Part shown: positions 3,601-56,204 of the stretch, piece after piece
Numbering within the stretch: position 1 is the stretch's first letter
How the letters are laid out: the number at the start of each line of letters is the position of its first letter
Source of the DNA: Podarcis melisellensis
Taxonomy: Eukaryota
NCBI GenBank assembly: GCA_964234715.1
Contig: OZ174277.1
DNA length: 64,000 nt
Strand: one strand, 5' to 3'
Made by a program: the position numbers and the translations under genes
Notes under the pieces: model-generated
What the model was told of the DNA's origin: nothing
Seen by the model: the letters and a program-made list of their open reading frames with translations, nothing else
Database searches by the model: none

Positions 3601-4198
3601 CCTATAACGAAAGAATGATGAGGAGTCCACTCTAAACTGTGCGTTTTTTGTTGTTCTTTGGCAGCTGTGGCTTTACCTGTTTCACACCTGATGTCAGGTG
3701 TGTGTGATAGGCGGGCATGGCCAGCCAAAAATCACTTTGTGGGACAAATTGGGCAGCTGATTTGGTGCGCCTAGAGTGACCCATTAGCTGCAGGTACCCC
3801 ACCACTGCCCTAGAGTCTAAACCAGAATCCCCCAACTTGTGTGATGTTTTGAACTACAAATTCCATAATCCCTGACCACTGGTCATACTGTCTGGGATTG
3901 AAGGTTGCTAGAGCCTAAGAAGATCTAGGTTGGCAAAGGCTGACTTGGATCATGACAGGGGAGTTCTGTCAGTTGTGCCCTTCTGCTGATACTTCAGTGT
4001 TGTGAACTGGTCGCAAGGTCAAAGAAACAGGTGGTGGGGAGGCTTAATTTCACCATTTCATGGTTGCAGAAGACTTGTAGTTGTTATAAGAGTTATATTC
4101 CCACGGAATGTGCATAAGGTCTGAATGTTCTGCTGTTCTCTGACTGTGTACAGCCCGTTGCTGATTGCATCTCTCCTTTGTTTTACCCCACTTTCTAG

Positions 4199-4938
4199 GA
4201 AGAGGGCACTGGGATGAAGAAAGCGTTGTCAGTTCCCCAGACCCTGGTTCTGCTAGTGAATCAGGTGACCGATACCACTCTGAGCAGTATCAGGGCAGCC
4301 CACATGAGCCCAGCAAAATCGAGACTCTCATAAGAGCGACTCAGCAAATGATTAAAGAAGAAGAAAACAGGCTGCAGTTGCGGAAGTCGACTCCCGATCA
4401 GCTGGTTTCCATTAACGGAGCAGGGAAAAAGCACTCTGTTTGCTTCGCAAGCTACCACCACCACCAGCAACAACAGCTGAGAGGAGATGCCTGCAGGGTC
4501 CCTAGTGTCACCAACACATCTCCCTGCGAACACACACAGCAACAAGATGGGAAGATGATGAGCCCTCACGACAATGACTATGACAACAGCCCCACGGCAC
4601 TGTCTAGAATAAGCAGCCCCAATTCTGACCGAATTTCTAAATCCAGTTTGATACTGGCTAAGGACTGCCTTCAGTCAGAAGTGTCGCCTCATCAAACTCC
4701 AGGGGATAACTCTGCAGAATCCCCAAACTATTACAATTCCCATCGGCAGTACTTTGATAAGCATGCATACACGCTAACAGGATATGCTCTGGAGCACCTT
4801 TACGACAGCGAAACCATCAGGAACTATTCTTTGGGTTGCAATGGGTCACACTTTGATGTGACGTCTCACCTACGGATGCAGCAAGATCCAGCACAGGGAC
4901 ATAAGGGGACATCTGTTATAATAACCAATGGAAGCTGA
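4199..4938 (+). CDS. SIM1: Single-minded homolog 1, last coding exon
   Basis: Acceptor TTTCTAG ends at 4198. G(2205)+GA rebuilds a Gly codon, giving ...[29 protein letters not shown]...[17 protein letters not shown]...[12 protein letters not shown], the SIM1 C-terminus. TGA at 4936-4938. Confidence 0.97.
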
Positions 4939-25582: not shown

Positions 25583-27331
25583 AAGAGATGTCATACAATG
25601 CAAAAAAGGTGCTTATTTGCTGCAAACCATATTTGCCAACCTAGAGTCAAACAATCAGATATTGATGGACTCCAACGCCCATCAGCTCCAGCCAACATGG
25701 CCAGTGTTCAAGGACGATGGGAATTGTAGTCCAACAGGATCCAGAGACATCCAAATTGAAAGAAAAGGTTTTAAATATTCAGTTTAAAGAATATACTGAT
25801 TCTTTTTCCATGCCAAAATCATATATGCCAAAGTTAATATGTTTCATGATGTCTGAAAACCTATTTAAAGAACCCAACCAGCAGAATCTATCAGACAAAA
25901 TTAAACTCCAGCTTCCTCGGCAAACGATGATTGGGAAATTTGCTCTTCATTAAATCTGTTCAGGTAGCTTTGGCCCACTTGATACTTTCCCAATTGATAA
26001 TAACTGTCCCAACTAGCTTCAGCTGCAAGTGAGCCAGATTTGGAGAGACCCACCACTGCAGATAGATGATGGCTCAAGCAAGTGAGAGGCCAGTAATACC
26101 AGGTAGACAGGGAAGCAAGGTAGAATCAACATAATGAAGTGTGGTCCTAGGTGTGTGTTTCAGGACCCACAGTTACTTGTCCTGCAGATGGGTAGTTGCA
26201 GAAGTTGTCTCAGCACTGTCCTAGAGAAAGTCCAGACTCCAGTGAGCACAGCTTCACATAGGATGGACCAAAGACTCTCTGTGTTCAATGATTCCTGTTC
26301 TGGGGCCATGGCACTTCATTCCATAGCCAAATATTGGAAGTTTAGGCTCACATGTCCTTTCCCATGGGTAGGGTTCAGAGAAGAGTGATAAGAATTCCAC
26401 TTGTGCAATAGGACGTTCCTGGCTTCTCTCCACTCACTGCACGCCCCCCTGAATCCTCCCCAAAATTGCTTCTGCAGATTGAGGGACAGTCTGGAACTGA
26501 ATGGAAGAGGCATAGGGAGGGGCTGTAGTGAGTAAGAGAAAAGGGGGAAATTTAGCAGGCCTACCTTGCTCAAGGGAAAGTGACTTTCTGGTTGAGCATG
26601 ACACCTTGGGATCCAAGTCCATGTAAAGACAACAAAGAATCCCCCACCCTAAAATAAATAAATGAATCCAGTGATGCAATTAGGTAATTTCAGGCGCTGA
26701 ATTTAATGGCCTGATTGCACTTCCAAATGTGGCAAGCCAGCCCTGCTGCATTTGGGGTACCCTGTTAATTGTGCACATCTTCTCCCCCCAAGTCCTGCCC
26801 ATCGATACTGTGGAATGAATCTTAGGGATTTGCACTGAAAGTTGATCAGTCTGTATTGTCATTCAGAATGATTTCTGTTTGAAGCCAGCTTGTACAGCAT
26901 GGATACCTAACCTGTGGCCCTCTAGTTACTGATGGAGTATAGCTGCTTTCATCCCCGACCACTGGCCACACTGACTGGGATTGGAGTCCAACAATCTCTG
27001 GTCTGATCACAGGGTAAGCCAGCCCTTTCAGTGCAGTTCTAGTACTTTTGTTGAAGCTGATTTCTGGCACTAGCTCTGAACTGTAGTTAGTAAAGCTGAG
27101 TTTTACTCTGCTCAGCTGGGATGTTGGGTGCTATAAAAACAGGGCATTACTTAACATTGCTCACTAGGCAGTTAATATAACAGCACTGTGAAAGGAAGGA
27201 GGGCCTATAGTAGATTGTTATAGGATCTATTCAGCTTGTTTCTGGGAACAGGTAGGTAGCTGTGTTGGTCTGCTGTAGTCAAAACAAAATAAAAAAAAGT
27301 GAAGGCACACTTCTTCACTTCTTCTTCTTCC

Positions 27332-27367
27332 TATCTGAAGAAGTGTTCATGCACACGAAAGCTCATA
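27332..27367 (+). ncRNA. Minimal type I hammerhead ribozyme motif (copy 1)
   Basis: TAT-CTGAAGA-A-GTGT(TCATGC)ACAC-GAAA-GC-TC-ATA: complete core, stem II 4 bp, stem I TAT/ATA, predicted cleavage after C27364. Confidence 0.7.
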
Positions 27368-27419
27368 CCAATAACAAACTTAGTTGGTCTCAAAGGTGCT
27401 ACTGGAAGGAATTTTTTTA

Positions 27420-34389: not shown

Positions 34390-35502
34390 TAGTTTAGCAA
34401 ATGGAATGCCACCAGAGAAGAGACCCTATTCTAAGCAAACTTCCCCTAATCATGAGAAGCAGATAAGAGCTTTCTCCACAGATCACAGGGCAAAGGTCAA
34501 CTTCACAGCGCCCACAGGTGCCAGTGTGCCAGCCAATGCATCAGTTGGTGCCCCCATAATGTCTCAGTTGGTGCCCACATAATATCCCCTGTATCTCAGG
34601 GAGAATCCTGAAACCTGAATAGGTCTTTCTGTCCTATCCTTATTTTTCATTCATTATGAATTAAAATTAATGAATTTACAGGTGAAAGCTGTTGGTTGCT
34701 TTTGCGTTTAATGTTTTGTACATGCATTGTTTAAATTTGTACAGAGGTCATCATTCCTAAATCAGAAGTACCAGCTTAGTGACCCTTTAAAAAAACCTGG
34801 CCAAAATTCTTCCCAAGCTTTTTTTTTTTTAATCCCCCTGAACACCAAACTGCTTTCCCCCTCCCCACTTTTGTTTTTAAGCTTTCAATTGATTTCCCCA
34901 GTGGATGTGAAGTAGCAGCATCTTTTAAACTTTGGGTAACTGGTTTTTCCTCATGTTTTCTTCCCTTAGTCTTTGTAAATGGATATCATTCTGAGCTTGT
35001 AGCCTTGAGTTTCTCATGTGATATTTATCTATCTGAGATAGTGATACTGCTGACATTTCTGAAACAATCTGAGATCTCTATGCTACATTTCTGCAGGTGC
35101 CAGATTACTTATCTTGGAGGAGTTTAGAATTGTCTGATAACGTCAATATTTGGCTACTACAGAAGCTTTACAGTAGTTAACAAAAGAGAGAGAAAGTAGA
35201 AGATCTGTCTTCTCCCTTATCTCAAGGTATTGACTAACAGCCCAGTACATAGCTTTGTTAAGTGAAAACACTAGAATCAAAAGTAATGGGCTCAGAAACA
35301 AACACAAAAACACAAACCACACAGATGCAAACTTTCCCTGCTAATCTGTCTGAGACTTATTTTTCCATCTGTGGTCTGACGAAAATGCCAATGTGATCTG
35401 TTTCATGCATGGATATTAAGACTTTTCAAATTCTAACTTATTTATTTCATTTATATTCCACTTTTCCTCCAGTGTGCTGAAGGTAGCATACTTAGTTCCT
35501 CC

Positions 35503-35628
35503 TAGGACTTTTATTCAGCCAGAACTCAGTTCTGGTACCTCTTAGGTGGGCGCCGTTGCCATTATAAGAGAAGAAGGGAGGTGTTCGTGGTGAGTTTCAG
35601 AACCTCTTTTTCCAGAAAAATAGCACTG
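35503..35628. mobile_element. hAT-type MITE, family A copy 3
   Basis: Homologous to 1450-1585; ends AAAAATAGCACTG. Confidence 0.72.
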
Positions 35629-35674
35629 GTTCTCCTCTTCCTCATTTTATCTTCACAATAACACTGTGAGGTAG

Positions 35675-35768
35675 TCAAAACAAAAAAAATTCCTTCCAGT
35701 AGCACCTTAAAGACCAACTAAGTTAGTTCTTGGTATGAGCTTTCGTGTGCATGCACACTTCTTCAGAT
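35675..35768 (-). mobile_element. Penelope-like terminal-repeat fragment
   Basis: 12-bp TSD ACTGTGAGGTAG (35663-35674, 35769-35780); near-identical to 54478-54560. Confidence 0.75.
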
Positions 35769-35770
35769 AC
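35733..35770 (-). ncRNA. Minimal type I hammerhead ribozyme motif (copy 2, best preserved)
   Basis: Minus strand GTAT-CTGAAGA-A-GTGTGCATGCACAC-GAAA-GC-TC-ATAC: stem I GUAU/AUAC, palindromic stem II, self-complementary AGCU at stem III. Confidence 0.75.
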
Positions 35771-36021
35771 TGTGAGGTAGGTTGGGCTAAGAGACAGTGA
35801 CTGGCCCAAGGTCACACAGTGAGCTTTGTGGCTGAGCAAGGATTTGAAGTCTGGTCTCCTAAAGTCATAGACCAACACTCTAACCATTATATAGCAATGG
35901 ATGAATGACTTGTGAGAAGCATTTAGTTGACTTGTAAAATGTCTCAAATAGAAGAATGCACATAGCTTCTTCCCTTAGCTGTTGTTCACAGAAGCAGCCA
36001 AAATGATTAGGCCACAGTGAC

Positions 36022-54000: not shown

Positions 54001-54444
54001 ACAATTCAGGTGAGATTTCTTTTAGGGAAATGTCCTGAGCTTGAGTGGGAAAGGGGTGTGGTGGAGCTTTTTCATTTTGCTGGACAGATCTAGGTTTTAG
54101 GATTTGGGGAAAATATTAAATATTATATTGGGGGAAATATTAAAATAAAGTGTTTGCTTTTTTACTGTACATGGATCTATACCGGTTTTCTCACCGCCCC
54201 CTTCCCTTGTGGAAGCCAATAGAAATATATATTATCAAGGGAGAAGAGGCTGTACCCCAAAAAATATGTGGTGGGGGACAGAAGTCCACCCCACCACCAA
54301 TGGCCCTTGTGGTAGCTGGGTCCTTTCTATGAGGGTGACACAGAGTGGTTCCAAAACAGACAAAGCTGCTTTCCAAAGCCACAGATATATATTGTTATGA
54401 GTTTGTGGGAATTAGACTCCCCTGAATTACTGGGTCTAGTAGGT

Positions 54445-54610
54445 TACAGATAGGTAGCCGTGTTGGTCTGCCATAGTCAAAACAAAACAAAATTCCTTCC
54501 AGTAGCACCTTAAAGACCAACTAAGTCAGTTCTTGGTATGAGCTTTCGTGTGCATGCACATGAAAGCTCATACCAAGAACTGACTTAGTTGGTCTTTAAG
54601 GTGCTACTGG
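54445..54610. mobile_element. Penelope-like terminal-repeat insertion with fold-back inversion
   Basis: 17-bp TSD TACTGGGTCTAGTAGGT (54428-54444, 54605-54621); palindrome at 54499-54610. Confidence 0.78.
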
Positions 54611-56204
54611 GTCTAGTAGGTGTTAGAATTTAATCAAGGCAAATGTTATAAGATAAGCCTGGCCAGTTTCTTGATAAGGTAATCACTTGGGAGATGGGCC
54701 ATTTTGAGAACAAAGGGAAGGTAATGAACCATTAGGAAAGCCAAAGAGAGGGGTTTTAAAGTTGAATTTGCTGTGCTGCGACCTAGAGAAAAAAGCTGCA
54801 GGTTGCTAAGTCAGCAAGCTGGAGAGAGGGTCAGAGCATGATGTCTGATGTGTGTTTTGAATCCAGAGCTGCACCTGTGGGAGAAACAAGACCTTCTCAG
54901 AGTGAAACGTGTCCCCCTCCATTGTAAGTTCAGGTTGTATATATGTAAATATACCATTATATCATCCGGACACCACAGTGTGCACTGTTCCTCATTTCTA
55001 AAAGGATGCTCAGAGATTGGTGTGACATGCAACAACATGCAAGTCTGATCTTGTCCCCAGTGCATACTGCTAATATATATGAACCGAGGCTTTTGAAGTA
55101 AATTGAGTTATGTGTGTATGACAAGATGGGTTGTGATAGAAAAACAGTGTCCTTGAGTTTAAATGGTTTTGTGTTAAATTAGGAAACATAATGTAGACAA
55201 ACAGTTAAGGTCCTTATATACACAATGGAGACTATATCATGGTCCTCACGTGGCCCTTAGCTTTCCCAAGCTTCCTTTTCCCTTTTATGTACTTTTATAC
55301 ATTATGTTCCTCAGCTTCTCAGAACTGATATACTTAGATTTTGATGCTCCTGCTGGCTTAAGTAGGGAAACACTGTGCTAATAAATTCTAATGCATAGTC
55401 AAGTCTCCACAGGCCTATGACCTTCCAGCAGTCGGGGGCTCAATGTAACACTTCATTCCCCTCCCCTTTTCTGGCTCTCGCTGTTTCTCTTGCCATTAGC
55501 CAGCGTCCTTGATTTATGGGTGGGCTGCCAGCAGGGCAACTCACCTGCAAAAATAGTTCACACAGTGTTGTTTATTGTACTAAGTAGACTTCACGCTGAC
55601 TGAGGGATTTTTCCAAGGGAAAAGGAGCTGCTGTCAGATCTTCCAGTATCACACCAAAATTGGCACCAATGATCTCTCAAATTTCGAGAGGAAATCCAGG
55701 AATAAGACGCCAACATGAGTTGCAGGCTTTTCTCATCGCTTGGGAGTTTGGGGGCAGAAGAGGACTACCCCCTACCAACCCAATTACACCCTGGCTTATA
55801 CTGAGAAATGTTCCAAGGGTGAACATGTGGCGCTTCTTTCCCTATTATGTTTGGGTCACTGTTCTTTCTTCATTTGCCCTCGAAAGCACACCTGAACTTT
55901 CTTCCAGTGTTTAGGTTTGAAATATTGCTGGGGTAGTTTATCCCACCCCAGAAATGAAGACGCAATATGTTAAAAGAGTAAATGAGCACCAGTGTTAATA
56001 CTAAACAGAATAGTTTATACAAAAAGGTGAATAAGAGGCAGCATGATAGAAGTGTATGAAATTATTCATGGTATGGGCAGTGGCAGATTCTGAGCTCTCA
56101 AATGTCAGCAGCGCCTTGTGTGGTGCTACAATTCAGCACCATTCTACAGCATTGTTTGGGTGTCCCTTGTGACCAAACTGCCTGCGCCACCCTAAAACCG
56201 CTTC

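Follow-up and report, generated by a model that had tools for sequence, protein, structure and literature searches.

How did a complete hammerhead ribozyme motif come to lie inside an interspersed repeat of a lizard genome, does the short unit that carries it propagate in its own right, and does the motif act as a ribozyme at all? These questions are raised by a minimal type-I hammerhead at positions 35733-35770, on the minus strand of a 64-kb window of Podarcis melisellensis contig OZ174277.1 (the window being the whole stretch of 64,000 nucleotides that was analysed). Our results make it quite likely that the unit, hereafter copy 1, is a short, recent and probably dead-on-arrival insertion made by the machinery of Penelope-like elements (PLEs).

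The segment behaves as a discrete insertion. Its length is 96 bp (95 bp when G35770 is counted with the target-site duplication), and it is flanked by an 11-bp duplication within a SINE (Table 1). Contigs of this SINE from elsewhere, which have loose ends before 35770, run straight into the window sequence at 35663 and below; SINE copies thus read across the empty site, which identifies 35675-35770 as a true insertion. The first-pass annotation, made from the sequence alone, had proposed an insertion of about 95 bp between target-site duplications, and the length of the segment, the duplication and the empty SINE sites all agree with it. The first four bases of the downstream duplication, CTAC (35671-35674), are also the start of an optional tail found in other members of the family, so that the real duplication may be 7-11 bp long; CTAC is a 4-nt junction microhomology at the proximal reverse-transcription start. 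In the data that carry a second species label, contigs break at the repeat at the locus orthologous to the insertion. The host SINE (35510-35663 and 35771-35890) has a word depth of 10^4 to 3x10^5 in both DNA runs, with thousands of copies at a likeness of at least 85% and many consensus-type differences from the copy at 35510-35890.

Two other identities for the unit were considered and ruled out. An open reading frame starting in helix II, as in the Anolis carolinensis element Poseidon_Ac (PAc), is incompatible with the stops found in all frames of the unit, which holds no reading frame, all three frames closing within 20 codons after helix II. A tRNA-derived pol III SINE was discarded as well, ARAGORN finding nothing in 35400-36000; the 3' T-run of the unit would suit a pol III terminator, yet tail-bearing copies read through it. 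A scan for sigma-70 promoters and intrinsic terminators, irrelevant for a eukaryote, found nothing.

The hammerhead motif is complete as read from the sequence. All the core positions, C3-U4-G5-A6-N7-G8-A9, G12-A13-A14, A15.1/U16.1 and H17, are present at 35733-35770, and in place of a helix III hairpin, absent from the motif, there is a self-complementary tetranucleotide only. A strict descriptor (CUGANGA, GAAA, U and H, with helices I and II of 4 bp or more each, no more than one extra nt after CUGANGA and a palindrome at 15.2/16.2) has its sole match in the window at this segment and matches none of 300 dinucleotide-shuffled windows on either strand; the motif is therefore not a chance match. 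These results bear out the complete core and the palindromic stem II on the minus strand that had been described before, together with the motif-descriptor check then suggested, and the core layout puts the predicted cleavage at the same place, between 35737 and 35736. The 4-bp stem I of that description stands in part: GUAU and AUAC do pair in copy 1, but G35770 may belong either to helix I or to the target-site duplication, and since copy 2 has a C at the equivalent position, the element itself may supply only 3 bp.

The hammerhead families of Rfam are described from the three-helix hammerhead with a helix III hairpin. As expected for a motif that lacks this hairpin, the Rfam search was blank for copy 1: there was no hammerhead match in the whole window at the gathering score (Hammerhead_1/3/II/HH9/HH10) and none in 301 bases at E up to 10, where only chance-level matches to unrelated families appeared. 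The scan with Hammerhead_1 that had been recommended as a check consequently fails to recover the motif.

Table 1. Coordinates of the insertion, of its hammerhead and of the related copies in the 64-kb window.
Feature	Position	Strand	Remarks
Host SINE split by the insertion	35510-35890	minus	boundaries approximate, from depth and loose ends
Copy 1, whole inserted unit	35675-35770	minus	hammerhead, body and T-rich end; solitary, no tail, 11-bp duplication
Upstream target-site duplication copy	35770-35780	minus	CTACCTCACA(G); G35770 common to helix I
Downstream target-site duplication copy	35664-35674	minus	CTACCTCACAG
Body	35690-35732	minus	about 45 nt
T-rich end	35675-35689	minus	copy 1 ends in T-rich run plus GA
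Minimal type-I hammerhead	35733-35770	minus	
Helix I	35767-35770 and 35733-35736	minus	GUAU pairs with AUAC
Core CUGAAGA	35766-35760	minus	
Extra (bulged) A after A9	35759	minus	
Helix II and loop	35745-35758		GUGUGCAUGCACAC; 14-nt palindrome, 5 bp and CAUG loop
Pair closing helix II	35758 and 35745		G35758 with C35745, the G10.1-C11.1 pair
GAAA	35744-35741	minus	
Self-complementary AGCU	35741-35738		palindromic 15.2/16.2; helix III only as dimer
GC-U	35740-35738		U35738 and C17 at 35737 are U and H of the core
Predicted cut	between 35737 and 35736		between C17 and A1.1
Copy 2	27248-27418	plus	inverted fragment, hammerhead scrap and sense arm
Copy 2, inverted fragment with tail	27248-27299		
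Copy 2, inverted scrap of hammerhead 5' half	about 27300-27317		reverse complement of 13 nt
Copy 2, hammerhead of sense arm	27332-27368		G-to-U in helix II; 3-bp helix I
Copy 3	54445-54611	minus	main copy and inverted partial copy
Copy 3, tail	54445-54478		34 nt
Copy 3, target-site duplication	54430-54444 and 54608-54622		CTGGGTCTAGTAGGT; 15 bp

Hammerheads of this kind point toward PLEs. The minimal hammerhead (min-HHR) was defined in the pseudo-LTRs (pLTRs) of these elements by Cervera and de la Pena in 2014 (PMC4209133). As in copy 1, it is a type-I motif in which CUGANGA...GAAA is followed by U and H, with no helix III hairpin. Its recurrent traits are a nucleotide between A9 and 10.1, the G10.1-C11.1 pair, a palindromic 15.2/16.2, a long helix II and a short helix I, all of which were outside the descriptor used in that search (PMC4209133). 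Every published feature of the PLE min-HHR is present at 35733-35770, including the extra A after A9, which the first-pass annotation had noted and which is a hallmark of the class, not a flaw. The min-HHR is expected to be active only as a dimer, and the class is known from reptiles (turtle, snakes) (PMC4209133; PMC6765202, citing Lunse, Weinberg and Breaker 2016/17). In contrast to the PLE pseudo-LTRs, where the motif lies inside a longer pLTR, in the family described here it stands at the very 5' end of most copies.

The arrangement of the copies in the window points in the same direction. PLE insertions are recognised by a tail of 30-40 bp that may be present at one end, a partial copy (inverted or in tandem) on the 5' side, frequent 5' truncation and variable target-site duplications (PMC8557442). 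Pattern and BLAST searches found three young loci of the family in the window, 89-98% identical, with copy 1 94-98% identical to the two others. They show the expected signatures, which match the account of PAc (PMC11167929) as well: a tail in copies 2 and 3 and not in copy 1, inverted partial copies in both tailed loci, and duplications measuring 11 bp in copy 1 and 15 bp in copy 3. The tail, of about 34 nt and AC-rich, is present in the main arm of copy 3 and in the inverted fragment of copy 2. The upstream part of copy 2 (27248-27331) is an internally deleted inverted partial copy. Copy 3 breaks off in helix II, the point at which an inverted partial copy is attached; the two make a spacerless fold-back (54499-54610), and both arms lack the CUGANGA half. 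Together, the hammerhead traits and the insertion signatures sustain the link to Penelope-like elements that had been suggested at the outset, as well as the statement that the class is known, the PLE min-HHR dating from 2014 (PMC4209133) and the mechanism in Anolis from 2024 (PMC11167929).

Further details of these copies deserve mention. The fold-back of copy 3 is centred exactly on the helix II palindrome, with the tail on one side only, and its 15-bp duplication and the arm end overlap in four nucleotides of microhomology (CTGG); the copy looks as if the palindrome had served for snap-back priming while the cDNA was being made. The end of the tail, read on the sense strand (…CCTATCTGTA, 54445-54455), has the hexamer TATCTG in common with the unit start TATCTGAAG (35764-35769), which may be chance or a trace of how the 5' end of the family arises.

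Logan contigs from two DNA runs, together with the raw reads from two RNA runs, were compared with 35450-36000. In the run from the window's species (X1), whose flank contigs show 0 differences, word depth is 2.9-4.8 million over the element as opposed to 42.5 in the unique flank; in the run under the second species label (X6, about 97% flank identity) the corresponding depths are 0.7-1.44 million and 8.7. A summed word depth is not a copy number; the values amount to some 10^5 copy-equivalents, under two species labels at least, and three loci per 64 kb agree with this. Exact-pattern scans of metagenome contigs and viral contigs found no further copies.

An element of this class that has been tested by experiment is PAc (Frangieh et al. 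2024, PMC11167929). According to the Repbase entry given in the supplement of PMC11167929, its hammerhead consists of CCU, CUGAGGA, one additional U, a long helix II, GAAA, an ACGU palindrome, C17 and AGG, a layout identical to that of the copy 1 hammerhead; the PAc motif spans the unit junction and has a 3-bp helix I. Beyond the core there is no sequence similarity between the two, and the helix II described here is a perfect 14-nt palindrome, unlike that of PAc. PAc is reverse-transcribed from two neighbouring internal sites of its RNA, and the 30-40 nt between them are the tail; the hammerhead cut lies at +26 of the ORF and the distal start at +111-118 (PMC11167929). In the present family, the distance from the cut to the 3' end is 62 nt without the tail and about 96 nt with it, so the spacing between the cut and the two 3' ends is similar, and the tail is AC-rich in both. 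The preference of PAc for AT-rich targets also fits the AT-rich flanks met beyond 35770, though copy 1 itself landed in a SINE. The differences concern coding and arrangement: the PAc ORF starts in helix II, whereas the unit described here is closed in all frames, and PAc copies are mostly tandem and full-length, whereas those of our family are mostly mini-copies and fold-backs.

These comparisons outline how copy 1 may have been made. The inserted DNA copies PLE-family RNA from the 5' edge of helix I to the T-rich site 62 nt past the cut, and sister copies end about 34 nt beyond that site, at the end of the optional tail. By reference to PAc, a GIY-YIG/RT protein would nick the DNA, and reverse transcription would begin internally on the element RNA, at one of two adjacent sites some 30-40 nt apart downstream of the hammerhead. 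The PAc RNA that the protein requires for binding continues past the point where reverse transcription begins (PMC11167929). An internal start would thus leave out the downstream RNA that recruits the protein and, if the PAc rule holds, a solitary copy such as copy 1 could not itself be remobilised; copies that stop at the internal start, as in PAc, would be by-products and not propagating units. As the motif has no helix III hairpin, one RNA molecule alone is not expected to cut, while two copies pairing through AGCU, probably with assistance from the PLE protein, would do so after C35737. The PAc rules are carried over by analogy, as the frames of the unit are closed and the window contains no partner RT gene. 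The absence of an RT/GIY-YIG gene from the window, where neither of two ORFs of at least 150 aa is an RT, counts against our reading, and so do the closed frames of the unit and the blank Rfam search. One of these ORFs (4165-4938, plus strand, 257 aa) encodes a Single-minded C-terminal domain (Pfam SIM_C, E = 1e-47), presumably as the final coding exon of a SIM gene; for the other there is no significant family.

Another observation that counts against the preferred explanation is the 5' end of the family. DNA contigs that reach 35770 (85-104 contigs) run on into unrelated AT-rich sequence, with an agreement of 0.34-0.38, and copies 1 and 2 both start at TATCTGAAG; the family 5' end is thus sharp at helix I, where most genomic copies end exactly, as judged from contig ends. 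Random 5' truncation would give ragged ends and does not predict this boundary, which is distinct from the ribozyme cut site, located 34 nt deeper in the unit. The boundary might stem from the site where transcription of the master copy starts, from processing of the RNA or from a template jump that is favoured there.

The sharp boundary leads to a different view of the family, essentially the one taken in the first-pass annotation: a dedicated non-autonomous family, SINE-like or made of retrozyme monomers, whose RNA of about 95-130 nt with a fixed 5' end at helix I would parasitise the RT of a PLE and propagate. The discrete 5' end speaks for it, as do a depth that stays roughly flat over 35697-35753 with no decay towards the 5' end, the missing reading frame and the very high copy number. 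PLE-derived non-autonomous hammerhead elements with a consensus down to 51 bp have moreover been reported in reptiles (bioRxiv 10.64898/2026.07.22.740005). The binding rule of PAc argues to the contrary, since copies that end at the reverse-transcription start would by that rule not be templates, and the RNA data weigh on the same side. Reads that cross 35770 (298-385 in both RNA runs) mostly share one upstream sequence, with an agreement of 0.68-0.78, indicating that at least one longer copy is expressed or that one host transcript dominates; under the first of these, the expressed copies are longer than the proposed unit. A sequence search shows that this dominant upstream context is absent from the window. 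The unit also lacks a tRNA-like part and is nowhere in the window arranged as a direct tandem, inverted arrangements being the only ones present; the few contig joints that lead from 35770 back into the unit have single-copy depth. We consider such a dedicated family possible but doubtful. Of the earlier proposal of a tiny non-coding unit mobilised by a PLE RT, the non-coding nature, the PLE link and the discrete 5' end hold, but a self-contained family is doubtful.

The shared upstream RNA sequence has a feature of its own. Its last bases, in sense orientation, are a pyrimidine tract followed by CAG, one base before helix I, an arrangement that resembles a splice acceptor. In the Penelope element of D. 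virilis, an intron ends at helix I (PMC4209133).

Other ribozyme-bearing retroposons help to delimit the family. Schistosome Sm-alpha and Sj-alpha are SINE-like retroposons, short, abundant and hammerhead-bearing like the present family; their promoter is a pol III promoter and their hammerhead is canonical. They are built as a promoter followed by the hammerhead (PMC6765202), whereas the unit described here has no tRNA-like part and its insertion signatures are of the PLE type. Animal non-LTR retrozymes are short, non-coding, PLE-related units with a type-I hammerhead (PMC7229834; bioRxiv 10.64898/2026.07.22.740005), and their dispersed monomers are common, also in reptiles, as are those of our family. 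They are, however, defined by direct tandem repeats that give circular RNAs, while copy 1 is solitary and the window holds inverted arrangements only; copy 1 thus falls outside this definition. A full-text literature search with four 19-20-nt strings of the family, covering papers and not Repbase or Dfam, retrieved no paper. Within that scope, the family is a member of the described PLE min-HHR class whose sequence is not found in the searchable literature.

Whether the hammerhead acts is a separate matter, on which fold predictions and RNA reads say little. The minimum free energy structure of the 38-mer forms helices I and II, and neither the 38-mer (z = -0.44) nor the 96-mer (z = +0.80) has a better fold energy than shuffled sequences, so that thermodynamic stability is no argument either way. 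The AGCU duplex alone is worth -2.5 kcal/mol, and two 38-mers favour an intermolecular helix II duplex. Over the full 96 nt, a fold with a competent hammerhead comes out 2.9 kcal/mol worse than one in which the CUGAAGA core pairs with nt 58-69, a further point counted against our explanation. The two RNA runs are stranded, and depth over the unit is about equal on both strands (about 400-500 each); nearly all the reads continue into unlike flanks and are thus read-through of many copies. Neither run has an excess of molecule 5' or 3' ends at any place, 35737/35736 included; this too counts against our explanation but is a weak negative, given that 5'-OH and cyclic-phosphate ends are poorly assayed by standard RNA-seq. 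As modelled and sampled here, fold energies and RNA ends neither show nor exclude activity of the copy 1 hammerhead.

In this regard, the hammerhead consensus could be kept for a purpose other than catalysis, with no ribozyme action in vivo. The segment might serve the retroelement as a protein-binding or RNA-folding element beside the reverse-transcription start, and its palindromic helix II might be a snap-back point that creates fold-back copies. The missing read ends at the cut site fit such a role, and PAc likewise shows no RNA-seq ends at its cut site (PMC11167929). Even dimers of PLE minimal hammerheads show poor cleavage in vitro (PMC4209133), PAc cleaves only together with the PLE protein, and PAc hammerhead mutants leave insertion in vitro unaffected (PMC11167929). 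The exact fold-back of copy 3 in the helix II palindrome and the alternative fold that sequesters the core are also in line with this notion. The sensitivity of standard RNA-seq to the relevant ends limits the first of these points, however, and the full core is kept in PLE families of unrelated sequence (PAc and the present one), which is hard to understand without selection on catalysis in master copies. Furthermore, C3G and G8C each lose activity in PAc and the compensatory C3G/G8C partly rescues cleavage (PMC11167929). On balance, we regard a purely non-catalytic role as rather unlikely.

Among the family variants listed, those with a high share lie at 35710, 35725 and 35729, all outside the motif; the contrast (0 of 38 motif positions against 3 of 58 elsewhere) is not significant (hypergeometric p about 0.22). 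No compensatory covariation is seen among the three near-identical window copies, which is also counted against our explanation: the G-to-U of copy 2 breaks one pair of helix II, and the change in copy 3 gives a G-U pair. The motif of copy 1 is intact simply because the copy is young, and nothing suggests function at 35733-35770. The idea that the host has taken over this motif as a working self-cleaving RNA in a local transcript is highly improbable; nothing specific favours it beyond the intact motif and the presence of the family in RNA on both strands, whereas copy 1 is one of about 10^5 near-identical young copies, lies inside a SINE about 31 kb from the sole recognisable exon of the window (the SIM C-terminal exon), and the RNA reads are not assignable to its locus and have no ends at the cut.

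An RNA-DNA difference was observed at 35719, T>C on the plus strand, that is A>G on the hammerhead-sense strand in a UAG context. Its share is 36-48% among the RNA reads whose first mate is on the plus strand, about 3% among reads oriented the other way and 0.1-0.2% of the DNA depth. The cause is either one dominant expressed copy that has the change or A-to-I editing, acting on double-stranded RNA formed by a family prone to fold-backs.

The findings presented here place copy 1 as an ordinary, if tidy, example: the locus alone is a routine repeat copy. The wider interest lies in the family. We hold it tentatively conceivable that the 95-130-nt unit is a discrete, self-standing PLE-derived mini-element present in about 10^5 copies in at least two related lizards, with a 5' end fixed at helix I, for instance by transcription start or RNA processing in a master copy. 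If true, it would be among the smallest ribozyme-bearing retroposon families known in amniotes, and its palindromic helix II would double as the snap-back point for the many spacerless palindromes of the genome. With about 10^5 insertion events, the family also amounts to a natural data set on a class whose mechanism has been reconstituted only once in vitro, with the Anolis element PAc. Genome-wide counts could be made of the two alternative 3' ends, of microhomologies at the junctions, of the sharp boundary at helix I and of the fold-backs centred on helix II; they would test the internal-initiation model in vivo and address the role of the hammerhead in Penelope-like elements.
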